A stretch of 38,544 nt of DNA from Octopus bimaculoides (taxonomy: Eukaryota). This document shows positions 3,705 through 32,109 of this stretch, one piece after another; position 1 is the first letter of the stretch, and the number at the start of each line of letters is the position of its first letter. The DNA lies in contig NC_068995.1 of the NCBI RefSeq assembly GCF_001194135.2, forward strand, positions 23,853,056 to 23,891,599, written 5' to 3'. Made by a program: the position numbers and the translations under genes. The notes under the pieces are model-generated. The model saw only the letters and a list, made by a program, of their open reading frames with translations, ran no database searches and was not told where the DNA came from.

Positions 3705-3864
3705 TGCTATGATAGTAGTAGGATGTTAAATGGTCAAGTGCCCTGAAAGTGACTTGTTGTGGATGGTAGTAGTGACTGAATTCTTGAGACATCTCTTTTG
3801 AATGTATCAATTTTATTATTTGCGTGTGTGTTATTCTAATGCCGTGGTGGATATGTCGTTTGTT

Positions 3865-4030
3865 GTAGATGCGTTCAAAAGGTGTCTGTATTTTGTAATA
3901 AAGAGAGTCTATTTACTAATTCGTCGGCTACAGGTTGTATCGTCCCTGAATTGGTAGAGGGGAAAAAATTCTGAAGCTTGGATTTTTGTTATTAGTGCAA
4001 ATGTCGGTGTGTTGGCTGAATGCTATTTTT
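3865..4030 (-). pseudogene. Penelope-like GIY-YIG endonuclease C-terminal relic
   Basis: With one frameshift the minus strand reads AFSQHTDICTNNKNPSFRIF/PLYQFRDDTTCSRRISK*TLFITKYRHLLN, resembling the PLE EN end (S..H...R..E..FI.....LN). Confidence 0.5.
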
Positions 4031-5215: not shown

Positions 5216-6986
5216 ATTTGTGATTTGAAATTCCGCCGAAGCCCATACATCACAATAAACAATACATTAGTAATCGTCTGTCNNNNNNNNNNNNNNNNNN
5301 NNNNNNNNNNNNNNNNNNNNNNNNNNNNNNNNNNNNNNNNNNNNNNNNNNNNNNNNNNNNNNNNNNNNNNNNNNNNNNNNNNNNNNNNNNNNNNNNNNNN
5401 NNNNNNNNNNNNNNNNNNNNNNNNNNNNNNNNNNNNNNNNNNNNNNNNNNNNNNNNNNNNNNNNNNNNNNNNNNNNNNNNNNNNNNNNNNNNNNNNNNNN
5501 NNNNNNNNNNNNNNNNNNNNNNNNNNNNNNNNNNNNNNNNNNNNNNNNNNNNNNNNNNNNNNNNNNNNNNNNNNNNNNNNNNNNNNNNNNNNNNNNNNNN
5601 NNNNNNNNNNNNNNNNNNNNNNNNNNNNNNNNNNNNNNNNNNNNNNNNNNNNNNNNNNNNNNNNNNNNNNNNNNNNNNNNNNNNNNNNNNNNNNNNNNNN
5701 NNNNNNNNNNNNNNNNNNNNNNNNNNNNNNNNNNNNNNNNNNNNNNNNNNNNNNNNNNNNNNNNNNNNNNNNNNNNNNNNNNNNNNNNNNNNNNNNNNNN
5801 NNNNNNNNNNNNNNNNNNNNNNNNNNNNNNNNNNNNNNNNNNNNNNNNNNNNNNNNNNNNNNNNNNNNNNNNNNNNNNNNNNNNNNNNNNNNNNNNNNNN
5901 NNNNNNNNNNNNNNNNNNNNNNNNNNNNNNNNNNNNNNNNNNNNNNNNNNNNNNNNNNNNNNNNNNNNNNNNNNNNNNNNNNNNNNNNNNNNNNNNNNNN
6001 NNNNNNNNNNNNNNNNNNNNNNNNNNNNNNNNNNNNNNNNNNNNNNNNNNNNNNNNNNNNNNNNNNNNNNNNNNNNNNNNATATATATATATATATATAC
6101 ATACACAGAAATGTGCATAAATGCTACATACGTTCGTATCTCACATTCTCTTAGCCAGGAATAAAATCCCTGATAAAATTTTAAGTAATCCTTGATAACA
6201 CATTGTTCTTTTCTTCCCCTCCTGATGTGTTCCTATTACTCTGATCTTTGATCTATTATATTGGCGTGGACGACTTCTGATCAGATATAGCATTCAACTT
6301 GTTATTAAATCTATTGATTTCAAAGAGTAGAAATTGGAATTTCGCTGTTAATGCCATTCCAAAGAACACGATTGTTGTATGTGAACTAAAATACATAGCA
6401 ACTGATTTTGCAGTACCGTTTCCGCCTATTGTAATATGCTTGTCGATGGAGCCATTAATATCAATTTTTGTCTGAATCCTTTTATCCATTTCATGTCTTA
6501 CACTCTAAAACTTTTCTGTTTTAGAACAAGTGAACAAAGACCATCTAGAAAGCAATTTCAGCGTCAGATATACACAGCAATCCGCAGATATATTATCCTC
6601 AACGAAAATAACGAATTCGAAGTCTATCTTATGAGATCATTGATGGAAGAGAAAATTATTTCGATAATATTAAATTATACTGCCGGATAGTGATGTATAG
6701 CAGATATTAGGGTTCGATGGGACATTGGGAGTAATTTGAAATCAGAGAGTTTTACAAATGTCATTTTGGTTTGACGTGCGTACAGCTCAAAGGAAATTGA
6801 AGCACTGGTATATAGGAGGGATCTATGACATAAATCAAAGTTACGTAGCGGTTACCTGCATTAGCAGTAAGTCGATCTAACTTTCCTAATAGGGTAATAT
6901 GGTCATCATATTCTTCACTGATATGACTCCTTAAAAATACTTTACTGTGTTGCATCTAAAGTATGTGCATATATAACATATGTAAT

Positions 6987-7510: not shown

Positions 7511-8634
7511 CAGGGGTTGGACAAAGTAATGGAAACACCTAGCATCATAGCATCATAATTTTGAAATATCTATAAAACCGTCAAAAGCTTGTTTATTTTA
7601 ATGTTTTTTTTAAAATTATTATTAGTGTTGCTTAATAGGTTTTGCTAAATTTGCTGGGGTTTTTTTTCAGATATCATCAGAAAAAGGTAATAAAAATTCA
7701 TTAAAATTTGTCGGACTTTCAAAGAGGTCAAATTGTTTGTGCTCGTATGGCAGGAGCTAGCGTAACCAAAACAGCCGAAATGCTTGGTGTATCAAGAAGT
7801 ACTGTCTCGAAAGTAATGATAGCCTTTGAGAAAGAGGGAAAAACTTCCTTGTCGAAACAAAACTCAGGAAGAAAACCAAAACTTTCAGATACACACCGTG
7901 AATTGTTAGAAAAGATCACAAAAGTACAGCTCGCAAAATTACTACCTCGCTTAATGACCACCTCGAGAACCCAGTTTCTATAAAAACTATTAGCCGGGAG
8001 CTGTACAAAGCCGGATTTCACGGGAGGGCTGCAATCAGAAAACCACTACCTTCAATAACAAACGTTGCAAAGCGTTTAGAGAGGAGTAAAAACCTACAGA
8101 ATTGGTCCCTAGAACAGTGGAATAATGTTATTTTCTCGGACGAGTAATACTTTACCGTATTTCCGACCACCGGCCGAGTATATGTGTGGAGACAGCCAAA
8201 AGAAGCATTTGACCCAGACTGCCTTCTTCCTATGTGATGATCTGGGGGTGGAGCTATATCTTGGAAATCCGCCGGCCCAACGGTTTTCCTTTATGGCAGA
8301 ATCAATAGTCAAGTCTATTTAAGCATTTTATCTGATCAAATTCACACAGCTAAATTTTTACTGAATGGCACGAGGAACATTCTAGTGAAGTTGATCATTT
8401 TATTTGGCCACCACAGTCCCTAGATCTCAATGTTATTGAATTTTTATGGTGCATTTTAGAAAAACAAATAAGGAGTCGATATCCTCCACCATCATCACTA
8501 CAAGAAGTGGAGACTATTTTAGCTGAAGAATGGACAAAAATTCCTTTGGAAACAATTCAAAATATGTACGTGTCAATACCTCATAGAATTCAAGCTTTAA
8601 TTACTGCCAAAGGCGGTCCTTCTCCATATTAACA
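7511..8634 (+). mobile_element. Decayed Tc1-like transposon, copy 1 (left TIR present)
   Basis: Left TIR CAGGGGTTGGACAAAGTAATGGAAACACC. Transposase remnants SDFQRGQIV..RMAGAS...GRKPKLS, FSDE, WPPQSLDLNVIE, AKGGPSPY*. Frameshifts and deletions throughout; the 3' end runs into a gap. Confidence 0.92.
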
Positions 8635-9074
8635 NNNNNNNNNNNNNNNNNNNNNNNNNNNNNNNNNNNNNNNNNNNNNNNNNNNNNNNNNNNNNNNNNN
8701 NNNNNNNNNNNNNNNNNNNNNNNNNNNNNNNNNNNNNNNNNNNNNNNNNNNNNNNNNNNNNNNNNNNNNNNNNNNNNNNNNNNNNNNNNNNNNNNNNNNN
8801 NNNNNNNNNNNNNNNNNNNNNNNNNNNNNNNNNNNNNNNNNNNNNNNNNNNNNNNNNNNNNNNNNNNNNNNNNNNNNNNNNNNNNNNNNNNNNNNNNNNN
8901 NNNNNNNNNNNNNNNNNNNNNNNNNNNNNNNNNNNNNNNNNNNNNNNNNNNNNNNNNNNNNNNNNNNNNNNNNNNNNNNNNNNNNNNNNNNNNNNNNNNN
9001 NNNNNNNNNNNNNNNNNNNNNNNNNNNNNNNNNNNNNNNNNNNNNNNNNNNNNNNNNNNNNNNNNNNNNNNNNN

Positions 9075-9870: not shown

Positions 9871-10635
9871 ACTCTTTATGCTCTTTATGTCCTTCTCTGT
9901 ACATCAGTCAAACGGGACGCTGCTTGGCTGAACGGTTCGCGGAGCACATGCGAAACATTAGAGTCGGCAATGACACCCCGGTCTCACGCCATTTTTGCTC
10001 TACCGGTCATTCATTACATCAGTCTGTTCGGATTGTCTTTGCATAGGGGCTATTCGGACTCCCGCCTTCTCTCTTAGCTCCTTTGTGCCACATGGGCTCA
10101 ACTCCCCTCCCCTCTTCATCAGACTCCCCTCATCTCCTCCTTTCATCTGACACCTACTTCCCCTCCTACCCATCTCTTCTCTCCTCTCTTACTCTGACAC
10201 CTGCTTCCTCTCTTCACTCCTACCGTTCTCCCCTTCATTGATATACACTCCATCCACNNNNNNNNNNNNNNNNNNNNNNNNNNNNNNNNNNNNNNNNNNN
10301 NNNNNNNNNNNNNNNNNNNNNNNNNNNNNNNNNNNNNNNNNNNNNNNNNNNNNNNNNNNNNNNNNNNNNNNNNNNNNNNNNNNNNNNNNNNNNNNNNNNN
10401 NNNNNNNNNNNNNNNNNNNNNNNNNNNNNNNNNNNNNNNNNNNNNNNNNNNNNNNNNNNNNNNNNNNNNNNNNNNNNNNNNNNNNNNNNNNNNNNNNNNN
10501 NNNNNAATTGAATTTAAAATGCCTTAAACGTTTTACCTTTTACTTGTTTCATCCGCAGACACGGTTTCGTACGTGTTAAATCATCAAAAATATCTTCCTT
10601 CCTTAATTGCATAGATTAAATATTATATAGATATA

Positions 10636-10794
10636 GGTGGAGGCGTGGTTGTTGTGGTAAGAAGATTGCTTCCCAACCACATGGCATCGGATTCGGTCCC
10701 ACTGCGTGGCATATTTGACAAGTGTCTTTTTCTATAGCCTCGGGCCGAGCATATCCTTATGCCTGGATTTGGTAGACGGAAATTGAAAGCTTGT

Positions 10795-10831
<37 letters not shown>
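10636..10831 (+). mobile_element. tRNA-derived SINE, 5' half, with internal (TA)n
   Basis: tRNA-like head (GTGGTAAGAAG...GGATTCGGTCCC) followed by the body AAGTGTC...TATAGCCTCGGGCCGA...GGATTTGGTAGACGGAAA, which I recognise as the common octopus SINE, then a TA run. Confidence 0.7.
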
Positions 10832-14512: not shown

Positions 14513-14798
14513 AAGGTAGTTGCTCTGACTGACATTTCATTGTGTTATTTGCCTAGTGTTCCTTTGAGCATGCGCCGTAAGGAACGCATTCGCACTCAAG
14601 CACTTTTGTATTGGTCTGATGTCTTTTCGGTTTTGACTTATCATGTACACTACGCAAAGCGAGAGAAATCTCAGGCGCCAAATACTCCGTATTTTCTTGT
14701 TTCTCTTTTTTCAGAACCTGAATAACTCTGACAGAATATATTTACTTATACACCCAGCCACACAACATGTACCCAGTGAAAAATATATGCATATAGGT

Positions 14799-21028: not shown

Positions 21029-21042
21029 GTAACATTTCAATA
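21029..21042 (+). repeat. Target-site duplication, left copy (GTAACATTTCAATA)
   Basis: An identical 14-mer occurs at 24203-24216. The two copies abut the ends of the PLE. Confidence 0.92.
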
Positions 21043-21097
21043 CATTATTTACATTATTTACATTCGACGGATATTTGTCCTCATCTTGTTTGTTGTT

Positions 21098-21143
21098 AAC
21101 ACAACGTTTCGGCTGATATACCCTCCAGCCTTCGTCAGGTGTC
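21098..21143 (-). ncRNA. Minimal type I hammerhead ribozyme (inverted copy)
   Basis: Minus strand: GACAC-CTGACGA-A-GGCTG-GAGGGTATAT-CAGCC-GAAAC-GTT-GTGTT. Confidence 0.85.
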
Positions 21144-21237
21144 TTGGGGAAATTTCGAACCTGGGTTCTCATTCCTAACGATGTTACTATTATTATATTA
21201 TTATTATTATTATTATTATTACTATTATTATTAATCA

Positions 21238-21305
21238 GGTCGCTGAATCGAACTCGGAACCTTGGGGTTAGTAGCCCGCGCTCTTAACCACTACGCCATA
21301 TGCCC
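21238..21305 (-). promoter_or_regulatory. tRNA-derived Pol III A/B-box head (inverted copy; 5-nt deletion after the B box)
   Basis: Reverse complement of 23909-23981, lacking 5 nt. Confidence 0.7.
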
Positions 21306-22139
21306 GTGGGCAATTATGGGGTGAATTTTAAGGCTTATAAATCTGTTATTTTTCTATCCATCCTCAATACCGGTTCCCATATGCTATTCATATCTGAACT
21401 CGGTCTACTTAGGAGGTTGCTGTGTCCTANNNNNNNNNNNNNNNNNNNNNNNNNNNNNNNNNNNNNNNNNNNNNNNNNNNNNNNNNNNNNNNNNNNNNNN
21501 NNNNNNNNNNNNNNNNNNNNNNNNNNNNNNNNNNNNNNNNNNNNNNNNNNNNNNNNNNNNNNNNNNNNNNNNNNNNNNNNNNNNNNNNNNNNNNNNNNNN
21601 NNNNNNNNNNNNNNNNNNNNNNNNNNNNNNNNNNNNNNNNNNNNNNNNNNNNNNNNNNNNNNNNNNNNNNNNNNNNNNNNNNNNNNNNNNNNNNNNNNNN
21701 NNNNNNNNNNNNNNNNNNNNNNNNNNNNNNNNNNNNNNNNNNNNNNNNNNNNNNNNNNNNNNNNNNNNNNNNNNNNNNNNNNNNNNNNNNNNNNNNNNNN
21801 NNNNNNNNNNNNNNNNNNNNNNNNNNNNNNNNNNNNNNNNNNNNNNNNNNNNNNNNNNNNNNNNNNNNNNNNNNNNNNNNNNNNNNNNNNNNNNNNNNNN
21901 NNNNNNNNNNNNNNNNNNNNNNNNNNNNNNNNNNNNNNNNNNNNNNNNNNNNNNNNNNNNNNNNNNNNNNNNNNNNNNNNNNNNNNNNNNNNNNNNNNNN
22001 NNNNNNNNNNNNNNNNNNNNNNNNNNNNNNNNNNNNNNNNNNNNNNNNNNNTCTTCATAATTGGAGTAGATAGTATGTTCTTGGAGTAGTTGTTTCTTAA
22101 TAGATTGTTACTGAGCTTGATCATTTCCTCGTGGTGGGT

Positions 22140-23879
22140 ATCAGAAAGAGAATCCAACAAGATCTAGGAAAATCGTACGTGAAAGAATTTGAAACGGTGA
22201 AGACACGCCAGATTAAGAAGTTTATGAAACTCAAAGGTCGGAGAATGAAGACTGAAGTCCATCACCCACCTGTGAAAGCAGTGATTAATGTAAGTAGCCG
22301 ACGACTGGAAGACTCCGAAGAAGCCGTACTAAACAAAGGTCTCAACTTTGCGACAACCATCAAGCGCATTCCATACTTGGACATAATAGCCCCTATTGAA
22401 GGGATAGCGGTAAAGTTACCGAAAGCTCAGGGAGTTGAACTAAGGTGGAAGGTGAGACAGGTACTGGAGAAAGCGAAACATCCCAAACCAAACATCACTA
22501 AGGAAGAAAAGTTCGCTATCAAAAGGCTACAAGGAGACAATTCCATCATAGTTCTCCCAGCGGACAAGGGAAATGCTACAGTGGTGATGAACAAGTCTGA
22601 CTACTCCGAAAAGAACAAGGATCACTTCACACCAATGAAGTACAGACAGCTGACTCAACACTACAGTAAACTACCACACATGTATGGTCTCCCTAAAATT
22701 CACAAGGAAGGTATTCCACTAAGACCTATAGTGAGCTGTAGAGGTTCAGCATGTCATCCATTGAGCCGCTTCTTGGTGGATATAATCAGTCCATTAGCAG
22801 GAAAGTCAACATCATACGTGAAGAATTCCACCCACTTCACAGAATGGATCAAGGATACCCCCATTGAATCCAACCAGATGGTGAGCCTAGATGTGATAAG
22901 TCTATTCACCAAAGTCCCAACTGGTGAAGCACTATCGGTGATTCAAGAAAAACTAGTGACAGACACCCATCTAAAAGAATGCACTAGTATNNNNNNNNNN
23001 NNNNNNNNNNNNNNNNNNNNNNNNNNNNNNNNNNNNNNNNNNNNNNNNNNNNNNNNNNNNNNNNNNNNNNNNNNNNNNNNNNNNNNNNNNNNNNNNNNNN
23101 NNNNNNNNNNNNNNNNNNNNNNNNNNNNNNNNNNNNNNNNNNNNNNNNNNNNNNNNNNNNNNNNNNNNNNNNNNNNNNNNNNNNNNNNNNNNNNNNNNNN
23201 NNNNNNNNNNNNNNNNNNNNNNNNNNNNNNNNNNNNNNNNNNNNNNNNNNNNNNNNNNNNNNNNNNNNNNNNNNNNNNNNNNNNNNNNNNNNNNNNNNNN
23301 NNNNNNNNNNNNNNNNNNNNNNNNNNNNNNNNNNNNNNNNNNNNNNNNNNNNNNNNNNNNNNNNNNNNNNNNNNNNNNNNNNNNNNNNNNNNNNNNNNNN
23401 NNNNNNNNNNNNNNNNNNNNNNNNNNNNNNNNNNNNNNNNGATATGCGGCCCATATGACATCAGGGCAGTATTCAAGAGCAATACAACACTTCGCAAATA
23501 TCTCCTTCGGGTAAAACCACCAACAGAAGAGAATATGACCAAAAACTGCGTGTACTCCATCCCATGCAGCTGTGGTAGATTATACAAAGGCGGAACATCT
23601 CACCCCCTCAAAATAAGGGTAGAAGAACATCGCAAAGCTGTGACACGAGGAGATATTGATAAATCGGGTATAGCTGATCATGTATGGAAAAATAGAAACC
23701 ACCTCCCCCTGTGGGATGAAGTTAAAATAATAGATAGGGAACAACACTGGAAAATACGAAAACTAAAAGAAGCAGCACATATGCTAGGACACAACAACCT
23801 CCTAAGTAGACCGAGTGCAGATACGAATAGCATATGGGAACCGGTATTGAGGATGGATAGAAAAATGACAGATTTATAA
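22140..23879 (+). CDS. PLE reverse transcriptase + GIY-YIG endonuclease ORF (5'-truncated, core RT in an N gap)
   Basis: LNKGLNFA, PADKGNATVVMN, YGLPKIHKEGIPLRPIVS, SYVKNSTHF, SLDVISLFTKVP. After the gap: CVYSIPCSCGRLYKGGT..LKIRVEEH, SGIADHVW, RKLKEAAH. Stop TAA at 23877-79. No true start codon, because the 5' end is the inversion junction. Confidence 0.9.
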   Translation: MRKRIQQDLGKSYVKEFETVKTRQIKKFMKLKGRRMKTEVHHPPVKAVINVSSRRLEDSEEAVLNKGLNFATTIKRIPYLDIIAPIEGIAVKLPKAQGVELRWKVRQVLEKAKHPKPNITKEEKFAIKRLQGDNSIIVLPADKGNATVVMNKSDYSEKNKDHFTPMKYRQLTQHYSKLPHMYGLPKIHKEGIPLRPIVSCRGSACHPLSRFLVDIISPLAGKSTSYVKNSTHFTEWIKDTPIESNQMVSLDVISLFTKVPTGEALSVIQEKLVTDTHLKECTSXXXXXXXXXXXXXXXXXXXXXXXXXXXXXXXXXXXXXXXXXXXXXXXXXXXXXXXXXXXXXXXXXXXXXXXXXXXXXXXXXXXXXXXXXXXXXXXXXXXXXXXXXXXXXXXXXXXXXXXXXXXXXXXXXXXXXXXXXXXXXXXXXXXXXXXICGPYDIRAVFKSNTTLRKYLLRVKPPTEENMTKNCVYSIPCSCGRLYKGGTSHPLKIRVEEHRKAVTRGDIDKSGIADHVWKNRNHLPLWDEVKIIDREQHWKIRKLKEAAHMLGHNNLLSRPSADTNSIWEPVLRMDRKMTDL

Positions 23880-23908
23880 GCCTTAAAATTCACCCCATAA
23901 TTGCCCAC

Positions 23909-23981
23909 GGGCATATGGCGTAGTGGTTAAGAGCGCGGGCTACTAACCCCAAGGTTCCGAGTTCGATTCACGGCAGCGACC
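23909..23981 (+). promoter_or_regulatory. tRNA-derived Pol III promoter head in the PLE 3' UTR
   Basis: A box TGGCGTAGTGG (23916-26) and B-box-like GAGTTCGATTC (23959-69) at tRNA spacing, with residual anticodon (GGG-CTACTAA-CCC) and T-arm (CCGAG/CACGG) stems. The acceptor stem does not pair. Confidence 0.75.
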
Positions 23982-24069
23982 TGATTAATAATAATAGTAA
24001 TAATAATAATAATAATATAATAATAGTAACATCGTTAGGAATGAGAACCCAGGTTCGAAATTTCCCCAA

Positions 24070-24115
24070 GACACCTGATGAAGGCTGGAGGGTATAACAG
24101 CCGAAACGTTGTGTT
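24070..24115 (+). ncRNA. Minimal type I hammerhead ribozyme
   Basis: GACAC-CTGATGA-A-GGCTG-GAGGGTATAA-CAGCC-GAAAC-GTT-GTGTT. Intact CUGANGA/GAAA core, 5-bp stems I and II, palindromic AACGTT stem III. Predicted cleavage after GUU at 24110. Confidence 0.87.
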
Positions 24116-24202
24116 AACAACAAACAAGATGAGGACAAATATCCGTCGAATGTAAATAATGTAAATAATGTAAATAATTCCTCATCTCTTAAATATAGAA
24201 CT

Positions 24203-24216
24203 GTAACATTTCAATA
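24203..24216 (+). repeat. Target-site duplication, right copy (GTAACATTTCAATA)
   Basis: Identical to 21029-21042. Confidence 0.92.
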
Positions 24217-30967: not shown

Positions 30968-32109
30968 GGTAATTAAAATTCAATAAAATCACAGATTTAT
31001 CGGACTTTCAAAGAGGACAAGTTGTTGGTGCTCTTAAGGTAGATGCTAGCGTAACCAAAACAGCCGAAANNNNNNNNNNCAAAGAGGACAAGTTGTTGGT
31101 GCTCTTAAGGTAGATGCTAGCGTAACCAAAACAGCCGAAATGTTTGGTGTATCAAGAAGTACTGTCTCGAAAGTAATTACAGCCTTTAAGAAATAGGGAA
31201 AATTCTTCATCGAAACAAAACTCCGGAAGAAAACCCAAATTTTCATATAAGGACTGTCAGACTTTTACGCGAATTGTTAGAAAGGATCACAAAAGTAAAG
31301 CTCCCAGAATTACTGCAGAACTTGATGACCACTTTGAGAACCCAAATTCCAAAGAAACCTGTTCGCCAGAAACTGCACAAAGCCAGATTTCACGGGAGGG
31401 CCGCAATCAGAAAACCACTACTTTCAAAAACAAACGTTACAAAGCATTTAGAGTGGAGTAAAAACCTACAGAATTGGTCCCTAGAGTAGTGGGAGAATGG
31501 TATTTTCTCCGACGAAACATCCTTTACCTTCTTTCCGACCACCGGCCGAGTATACGTGTAGAGACAGCCAAAAGAAGCATTTGACTCAGACTGCCTTTTT
31601 CCAACTGTTACACATGGAGGGGGATCTGTGATGATCTAGGGATCTATATCTTGGAAATCCGCCGGCCCAATGGTTTCCCTTGATGGCAGAATTAATAGCC
31701 AAGACTACTTAAGCGTTTTATCTAATCAAATTCATCCTATGGTTGCAAAACTGTTTCCGGAGGGAAACGCAATATTTCAGGATGATAATGCACCAATTCA
31801 CACATCTAAAATTGTTACTGAATGGCACGATGAACATTCTAGTGAAGTTGAACATCTTATCTGGCCACTACAGTCACCAGTTCTCAATATTATTGAACAT
31901 TTACGGTACAATAAAAAAAAAAAAGTAAGGAGTCGATATCCACCACCATCATCACTACAAGAACTGGAGACTGTTTTAGCTGAAGAATGGCTAAAAATTC
32001 TTTTGGAAACAATTCAAACTTTGCACGAGTCCATACCACCTAGTATTCAAACTGTAATTACTCCCAAAGACGGTCCTACACCATATTAAAATAAATTTTC
32101 CAGCCCCTG
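30968..32109 (+). mobile_element. Decayed Tc1-like transposon, copy 2 (DD36E; outer right TIR + TA)
   Basis: Same family as 7511-8634. FSDE ... QDDNAPIH ... SPVLNIIE ... KDGPTPY*. Ends ...TTCCAGCCCCTG|TA (reverse complement of CAGGGGCTGGAA). No left TIR. Confidence 0.92.

Follow-up and report, generated by a model that had tools for sequence, protein, structure and literature searches.

We analysed a stretch of 38,544 nucleotides from Octopus bimaculoides (NCBI RefSeq assembly GCF_001194135.2, contig NC_068995.1, positions 23,853,056 to 23,891,599 of the forward strand), which we refer to as the window. Its sequence contains many gaps and many microsatellites. Positions 21029-24216 correspond to one insertion of a Penelope-like element (PLE), which is bounded by a single pair of target-site duplications (TSDs) and whose 3' terminal module carries a tRNA-like block, termed the head, followed by a hammerhead ribozyme motif (Table 1). 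The insertion consists of an inverted copy (left arm) and a forward copy (right arm). The left arm is 95.8% identical to positions 23800-24172 and lacks the last ~30 nt of the right arm, termed the tail. Its 3' module extends from 21043 to 21339, with the A and B boxes of the head at 21245-21298 and the core of the hammerhead at 21104-21138. Directly after the gap in this arm follows an inverted internal piece of the open reading frame (ORF) at 22052-22143, which matches an O. sinensis copy in reverse orientation (L010; sampled loci are given as L numbers).

Known PLE insertions have an inverted 5'-truncated copy beside a forward copy and a tail of 30-40 bp at one end only (PMC8557442), and the tail has been explained by two internal start sites of reverse transcription (PMC11167929). 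The window shows this layout in full, namely an inverted 5'-truncated and a forward copy, a one-sided tail and a TSD, and the same layout is found in L001, L002, L003, L007, L009 and L012. The two arms are one insertion event and not independent copies. Since they lie inside one TSD pair, they do not provide independent evidence about the family. A previous interpretation of this stretch, which we call the sequence-only reading, had inferred that the cassette of head and hammerhead was copied into both arms. Both arms do carry the module, but this is trivial for two arms of a single insertion.

Table 1. Features of the PLE insertion, with positions in the window.
Feature	Position	Strand	Evidence or remark
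Left TSD, GTAACATTTCAATA	21029-21042	.	14-mer identical to 24203-24216
Inverted 5'-truncated PLE copy, ~1.1 kb, across N gap 21430-22051	21043-22143	-	Arm identity, ORF match, motifs
Forward 5'-truncated PLE ORF, reverse transcriptase then putative C-terminal GIY-YIG, stop codon 23877-23879	22143-23879	+	ORF call, homologues, colinearity
Conserved spacer/leader before the head, TTAAAATTCAC...AATTGCCCAC	23880-23908	+	66% identity to the sister lineage, P=0.01
tRNA-derived head; D arm and T arm recognisable, no acceptor stem	23909-23981	+	Rfam, ARAGORN, box pattern
(TAA)15 microsatellite, octopus lineage only	23986-24029	+	TRF
Second B-box-like motif, GGTTCGAA, just 5' of the hammerhead	24052-24059	+	Sister lineage has AGTTCGAA (L003 ~3980-3990)
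Minimal type-I hammerhead, predicted cleavage after U24110	24070-24115	+	Motif pattern, covariation
3'-terminal region as far as the first 3' end (end of the left arm)	24116-24170	+	Arm comparison, TRF
Tail, ~30 nt, right arm only	24171-24202	+	Fits the 30-40 bp PLE tail (PMC8557442, PMC11167929)
Right TSD, GTAACATTTCAATA	24203-24216	.	Element therefore ends at 24202

The forward ORF, which contains an N gap (22991-23440), is colinear with the O. sinensis copies at L010-L012, and its best named protein matches, with 83-86% identity, are from O. vulgaris and O. sinensis. Concerning the reverse transcriptase (RT), PF00078 RVT_1 and PF28514 are found in homologues of the N-terminal part. The O. 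sinensis ORF has a weak RVT_1 match (E=0.0014), and Pfam searches with the ORF fragments of the window gave no domain match. Concerning the GIY-YIG endonuclease (EN), one homologue of the window ORF with 62% identity bears this name in JGI, and the motif VYSIPCSCGRLYKGGT...RVEEH in the window ORF fits what we take to be the GIY-YIG pattern of PLEs. The EN fragment of the window had no match in sequence searches of Pfam or PDB. At 22611/22612 the window ORF has an in-frame deletion of 90 nt (30 codons), a segment that is kept in the O. sinensis and sister-lineage copies. We considered that the 67-91 extra nt found in O. sinensis at this position are a retained intron, and rejected this, as they are coding sequence that the window copy has lost. 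The window copy is dead: it is 5'-truncated and internally deleted, and its partner from the same insertion is an inverted partial copy.

Related copies were gathered via their encoded proteins, and the module was compared in 171 kb of sequence in total, a small sample that is centred on PLE loci. In every sampled copy with an intact junction between stop codon and module the head is found at the same place. At another locus, in O. vulgaris (L001 4058-4648, 84.7% identical), the same stop codon is followed by a 30-nt spacer, the head, the TAA repeat, the hammerhead and the 3' end. The approximately full-length 2.35-kb copy of O. sinensis (L010 10060-12409) has the head after the stop codon, and the head is also present in an octopus-like metagenome scrap (L004). 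Moreover, a homologous head is found in five out of five copies of a sister lineage (ENA ERZ21867824 / GCA_052426985.1; L002, L003, L007, L008 and L009). The EN of this lineage is ~67% identical to that of the octopus element at the protein level, and in the EN-coding part of the ORF the DNA identity is 74.5%. The whole module can be aligned between the two lineages, including the leader, the head, a GTTCGAA motif, the hammerhead and the 3' end. In the place of the octopus (TAA)n the sister lineage has ~60 nt of unrelated sequence.

No TSD was found in the window around the head or around the head plus (TAA)n. The two copies without a head, both from O. sinensis (L012 9411-9657 and 9972-10916), are internal-deletion derivatives. 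One of them has the ORF end fused directly to the last 22 nt of the tail, with an ATTC microhomology at the joint. The second consists of a partial ORF followed at once by (TAA)n, hammerhead and 3' end. A more distant PLE from a JGI sample has neither head nor hammerhead in the 290 nt after its stop codon, which indicates that the head is a lineage-specific feature among PLEs. Two scans of JGI metagenomes, one with protein and one with the hammerhead DNA pattern, gave no matches. The inheritance of the head can be followed from copy to copy, and these comparisons indicate that the tRNA-derived block has been in the module since before the octopus and sister lineages split and was passed on together with the RT/GIY-YIG ORF, the hammerhead and the RT entry region. 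The claim of the sequence-only reading that the cassette is part of the RT/GIY-YIG element is thus borne out by the shared position of the head in L001, L010, L004 and the five sister copies, and by the lack of a TSD of its own.

The A box of the head, TGGCGTAGTGG (23916-23926), matches the consensus TRGCNNAGTGG at 11 of 11 positions, and the B box, AGTTCGATTCA (23960-23970), matches GGTTCGANNCC at 9 of 11. The B box lies 34 nt from the A box, which is the spacing found in tRNAs. The combined A and B pattern has two matches in the window, one in each arm, compared to 0.00 expected in shuffled sequences, and it is also matched in L002, L003, L004 and L009. With A and B boxes at tRNA spacing, the head has the makings of a putative type-2 promoter of RNA polymerase III (Pol III). 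Rfam searches of the window gave no match at the gathering threshold and, at an E-value threshold, a weak match to tRNA only. This match falls on the head and scores 14.3 bits (E=7.4 over 4227 families), below the gathering score of 29; in it the D and T arms and a shortened anticodon arm are aligned. In the head of the sister lineage no tRNA match was found at the E-value threshold. ARAGORN with default settings does not detect a tRNA in the head. At a threshold of 90% it calls the head and 0 of 1000 shuffles; below 90% it is unreliable, since 8-25% of the shuffles are called as well. The weak Rfam score, together with an ARAGORN call beyond shuffles, indicates that the head is derived from a tRNA and is not a tRNA gene. 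A cloverleaf with an acceptor stem above the detection thresholds of these programs, as expected for a tRNA gene, is not found in it. Regarding the isotype of the source tRNA, an alignment to tRNA sequences was ambiguous (best Arg/Thr for the octopus head and Leu/Ser for the sister head), and none was assigned.

At the 5' edge of the head, the last bases of the leader and the first four of the head form the hairpin GCCC-AC-GGGC (23904-23912). The corresponding hairpin of the sister lineage is GTCC-AGCA-GGAC (L003 ~3799-3810), in which the second pair is changed from C-G to U-A, a covariation. In addition to the second B-box-like motif (Table 1), the sister lineage has a third one, GAGTTCGAC.

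The hammerhead has a helix I of GACAC/GUGUU, the core CUGAUGA, an additional A between A9 and G10.1, and a helix II of GGCUG/CAGCC followed by GAAA. It has no helix III and, as in the dimer type, the palindrome ACGU is in its place. The pattern has two matches in the window compared to 0.00 expected by chance. Rfam hammerhead models have no match in the window, because the motif is of the Penelope type without helix III. The core is invariant in nine out of ten copies, the exception being L012 with a G-to-A change in GAAA. Helix II is 88% paired and shows a swap of U-A to C-G between the lineages, while helix I has 3-5 bp. All parts of a catalytic core (CUGANGA...GAAA, helices I and II and a cleavable H17) are present, and self-cleavage is predicted. 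Folding two hammerhead copies together with RNAcofold gave a full duplex, which is uninformative. In the 3'-terminal region a GACA..TCCG block has a homologue in the sister lineage, and TRF detects a 9-nt repeat in 3.3 copies (24149-24178). The sequence of the tail also ends the O. vulgaris and O. sinensis copies. Thus, the tRNA-like A/B head, (TAA)n, hammerhead, repeat and the 3' end set by the TSD are all present where the sequence-only reading had placed them. Apart from this module, a different minimal hammerhead (CUGAUGA-U-GGGA...UCCC-UGAAAC-AGCU) is found in L001 as an inverted pair ~330 nt apart (722-777 on the minus strand and ~1140-1213), and the pair probably represents the ends of another PLE-related element.

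The identity between the octopus and the sister lineage was tested segment by segment against shuffles, with segments that are short and two lineages only. Identity is above shuffles for the leader (0.66, P=0.01), the A-box half (0.68, P=0.007) and the B-box half of the head (0.64, P=0.003), and for the hammerhead (0.79, P<0.003). It is not above shuffles for the anticodon/variable region, the spacer, the stretch before the hammerhead and the 3' end. Both box halves are conserved islands between the lineages. Of the three outcomes that the sequence-only reading had named as refuting it, none was observed, as far as they can be judged from sequence. Over nine heads, cloverleaf pairing amounts to 30% in the acceptor stem, 52% in the T stem and 89% in the D stem, which overlaps the A box, and no covariation in the cloverleaf is above shuffled controls. 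Since the boxes are kept but the cloverleaf is lost, the constraint looks like one on sequence motifs and not on the tRNA fold. Such motif conservation without an RNA fold is suggestive of, and would fit, a promoter constraint at the DNA level.

A profile search for the module in the 171 kb recovered PLE-linked copies, randomly 5'-truncated inverted fragments and one ambiguous exception. The latter is a head-to-head pair of short module copies in O. vulgaris (L001 5827-6146, within the region 5801-6300). Both copies end ~7 nt upstream of the tRNA position +1 (L001 6062-6079), and their junction lies exactly on the palindrome TGCCCACGGGCA. The pair is the only candidate for a stand-alone copy and it is ambiguous: it may be a retrotransposed RNA that was initiated at the head, or a snap-back artefact. 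Its ends might, with the same ambiguity, reflect those expected from a head-initiated RNA template, that is from a Pol III start. Amplified short copies that begin at the head and have their own TSDs, as in SINE2 elements, were not found in the PLE-centred 171 kb. Moreover, direct tandem copies were not seen at any sampled locus. The module shows neither the tandem units nor the canonical type-I hammerhead with helix III that characterize Sm-alpha repeats and retrozymes. The sequence-only reading had gone further on two points. For its suggestion of a PLE-dependent short interspersed nuclear element (SINE) caught attached to its partner, the key evidence is lacking, as the 171 kb contain one ambiguous pair only. 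For its suggestion that the head drives the downstream copy in a tandem PLE there is no example, as none of the sampled loci has a tandem copy.

An abundant octopus tRNA-SINE is found in the window (10600-10830, plus strand), in L010 (9395-9600, minus strand) and several times in L011 and L012. In this SINE the head is followed by a conserved body (..GGCAAGTGTCTTCTACTATAGCC..GGTAGACGGAAACTGAAAGA..) and then by a (TA)n tail. A derivation of this SINE from the module was rejected: the similarity of its head to the PLE head is 68%, no higher than for generic tRNAs, and neither body nor tail is related. Overall, the PLE head is ~65-68% similar to generic tRNAs or to the local SINE head. A tRNA-SINE with a poly(A) tail lies in L007 (8139-8240, minus strand), and its D-arm region is similar to the head of the sister-lineage PLE.

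Our preferred explanation, which we put forward tentatively, is that the block may be kept as a DNA-level type-2 (A/B box) Pol III promoter or as a TFIIIC site in the terminal module of the PLE, where it would give rise to a short RNA. Judged from the sequence, a SINE-like Pol III mechanism of this kind is plausible. A depletion of sense-strand T4 runs over the element, described below, would be in line with it. A tRNA-derived block would have been captured long ago into the 3' untranslated region (UTR) of an ancestral PLE lineage. Transcripts would start a few bases upstream of 23909 and cross the spacer, the hammerhead and the 3' end, with read-through to the 3' end expected because the module has no T4 terminator. 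Such read-through transcripts would therefore carry the site at which the PLE enzyme starts reverse transcription. The result would be a short, non-coding, retrotransposable transcription unit inside an autonomous element. The hammerhead, of which two copies are needed to build helix III, would trim multimeric or read-through RNAs, as has been proposed for other PLEs. What we infer in this scheme is that the promoter is active, that the short RNA is made and that it is mobilised.

Several observations weigh against a Pol III promoter or TFIIIC site. The B box of the window is imperfect (9 of 11), and many sampled copies have lesions in their boxes: the left arm has lost 5 nt, the O. vulgaris copy has a deletion in the B box, and L007 and L010 show point changes. 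There is no TTTT in the 295-nt module, and the sequence-only reading was thus right that the unit lacks a Pol III terminator of this kind, but the absence is not significant, since 43-52% of shuffles are also without TTTT. Moreover, the predicted cut at 24110 lies upstream of the RT entry region (~24170-24202) and would part the head from it, so that a cleaved head RNA would lose the entry site. At most one stand-alone copy, the ambiguous O. vulgaris pair, was found in the 171 kb, and its palindrome could equally have caused snap-back. Full-length copies start ~2 kb upstream of the head, and therefore the main template of retrotransposition is a long RNA and not a head-initiated one. The conservation tests rest on short segments and on two lineages only. 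Finally, the depletion of T4 runs described below is not significant in the ORF part under codon-permutation and synonymous-resampling nulls.

Some of the same features would be expected if the block were a functionless relic, which we consider possible but on balance unlikely. In this case, a tRNA or SINE head would have been captured once in the 3' UTR of a PLE, by template switching or insertion, and the boxes would merely be the slowest part to decay. In line with this, the head has lost its acceptor stem, does not keep the cloverleaf and tolerates deletions in individual copies; head-less deletion derivatives exist (L012), no stand-alone amplification was seen in the 171 kb, and the similarity to generic tRNAs or the local SINE head is only ~65-68%. 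However, a neutral passenger should decay like the spacer, which is unalignable between lineages whose EN is ~67% identical, whereas the leader and the box halves hold 64-68%, above shuffles. The copies that bear lesions are, moreover, old and dead ones. A more recent origin of the head, from a separate tRNA-SINE that inserted into the window PLE copy and was later duplicated into both arms, has next to no probability. The (TAA)n after the head could pass for a SINE tail, but no TSD surrounds the head plus (TAA)n, and the same position and flanks of the head recur at other loci from three octopus sources. In addition, the diverged lineage has the head without (TAA)n, and the abundant octopus SINE differs in body and tail. 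The related copies thus refute a private SINE insertion.

The conserved features of the head might also act in RNA. tRNA mimics process other long RNAs, for example the mascRNA of MALAT1, and with this precedent the block could be a tRNA mimic in a long PLE transcript, serving as an RNase P/RNase Z site, as a signal for export or stability, or in recognition by the RT. The recognisable T arm, the D arm with its 89% pairing and the hairpin at the 5' edge of the head, which covaries between the lineages, would be in line with such a role. However, the acceptor stem is paired to 30% and the T stem to 52%, without covariation above shuffles, and neither lineage has the acceptor/T minihelix on which RNase P and RNase Z depend. 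Moreover, the only PLE examined in vitro has its RT-binding region at another place, within the first 172 nt of the ORF (PMC11167929). On this evidence we consider an RNA-level role quite improbable.

A further alternative concerns the extent of the transcript. The head-bearing PLE copies contain 9 sense-strand runs of four or more T, compared to ~38 expected, which is a depletion of about four-fold over 11 copies (the count includes 22143-24202 of the window, L003 1330-4108, L009 4950-6875 and L010 10060-12409). Runs of four or more A are as frequent as expected in these copies, and the depletion of T4 runs is absent in a mariner-like element, in flanking DNA and in a head-less PLE (L006). 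It is conceivable, if very improbable, that the whole ~2.35-kb element is transcribed by Pol III from the boxes of an upstream copy, in tandem or as a pseudo-long terminal repeat (pseudo-LTR), with T4 runs being purged and the hammerhead removing the leader. This would be similar to R2, which rides on transcripts of RNA polymerase I and frees itself with a ribozyme resembling that of hepatitis delta virus. However, no sampled copy is in direct tandem, and the codon-aware nulls mentioned above remove the significance for the ORF.

In the papers on PLEs, retrozymes and octopus repeats that were searched (Repbase and Dfam were outside this search) we found no description of a tRNA-derived block in a PLE. 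This agrees with the sequence-only reading, which knew of no description of the arrangement in a PLE, and the combination of a tRNA-derived block with a hammerhead in a protein-coding PLE is probably an undescribed variant. With known hammerhead-bearing PLEs the octopus element shares the RT followed by a putative GIY-YIG domain, the hammerhead in the terminal module, the palindrome in the place of helix III and the expectation of cleavage as a dimer, and its insertions share the inverted 5'-truncated partner and the one-sided tail of 30-40 nt. In contrast, the PLE papers searched mention neither tRNA nor Pol III in this context, whereas in the octopus element a tRNA-derived block with both boxes is placed after the stop codon and before the hammerhead.

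The SINE-like elements Sm-alpha and Sj-alpha of schistosomes were reportedly described by Ferbeyre et al. in 1998. According to a later paper (PMC6765202), a short unit of these elements likewise combines a promoter, which in Sm-alpha is a Pol III promoter, with a hammerhead downstream of it. Sm-alpha, however, is non-coding, forms tandem repeats and has a canonical hammerhead. The octopus cassette, in contrast, is the 3' end of a protein-coding PLE, has a minimal hammerhead and was not seen in tandem arrays. Animal non-LTR retrozymes are short, non-autonomous hammerhead units that are considered to originate from PLE pseudo-LTRs and to depend on PLEs for their mobilisation (PMC7229834; 10.64898/2026.07.22.740005). 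They share with the octopus element a short hammerhead-bearing module with a tie to PLEs (Cervera & de la Pena 2020; Li et al. 2026). However, retrozymes have tandem units, classical type-I hammerheads and circular RNAs, and no conserved promoter motif has been reported for them, whereas the octopus PLE has a candidate promoter and no tandem units.

Outside the PLEs and their relatives, the elements Cassandra, Helenus and Ajax ('TRIMp3') likewise have the Pol III promoter of a small-RNA gene (5S or tRNA) in their terminal repeats, where it is kept in the form of its boxes (PMC10886601). They differ in being non-autonomous LTR elements with a primer-binding site and a polypurine tract, whereas the octopus block resides in an autonomous element of another class. 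For the autonomous partners of TRIMp3 elements, Kojima 2024 argues that they must use RNA polymerase II (PMC10886601). Finally, tRNA-SINEs that share their 3' tail with a partner long interspersed nuclear element (LINE) also combine a tRNA head with a 3' end that is recognised by the RT of the partner. In the octopus PLE, unlike in such SINE/LINE pairs, head and tail are physically within the partner, and the octopus tRNA-SINE does not have this tail.

PLEs are the least understood class of retrotransposons, and their mode of transcription and the purpose of their hammerheads are open. Sm-alpha-type repeats and animal retrozymes are suspected to be parasites or derivatives of PLEs, but a physical link has so far been missing. 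If the block in the octopus module is indeed a Pol III promoter or TFIIIC site, a PLE with a conserved Pol III-type block beside its hammerhead would supply this link. Short elements could then originate when a unit that already holds promoter, ribozyme and RT entry site loses its ORF. If the block is functionless, it would be a curiosity of one lineage of transposable elements only.

Some further features of the sampled loci are of note. In L009 (~6875-6945) a reversed tRNA-like fragment breaks the module. Near the PLE copies of L011, ARAGORN makes two calls of tRNA-Met(cat), at 14577 and 17239. Finally, the window contains two Tc1/mariner-like copies, at 7700-8640 and 30995-32090, which are ~86% identical.

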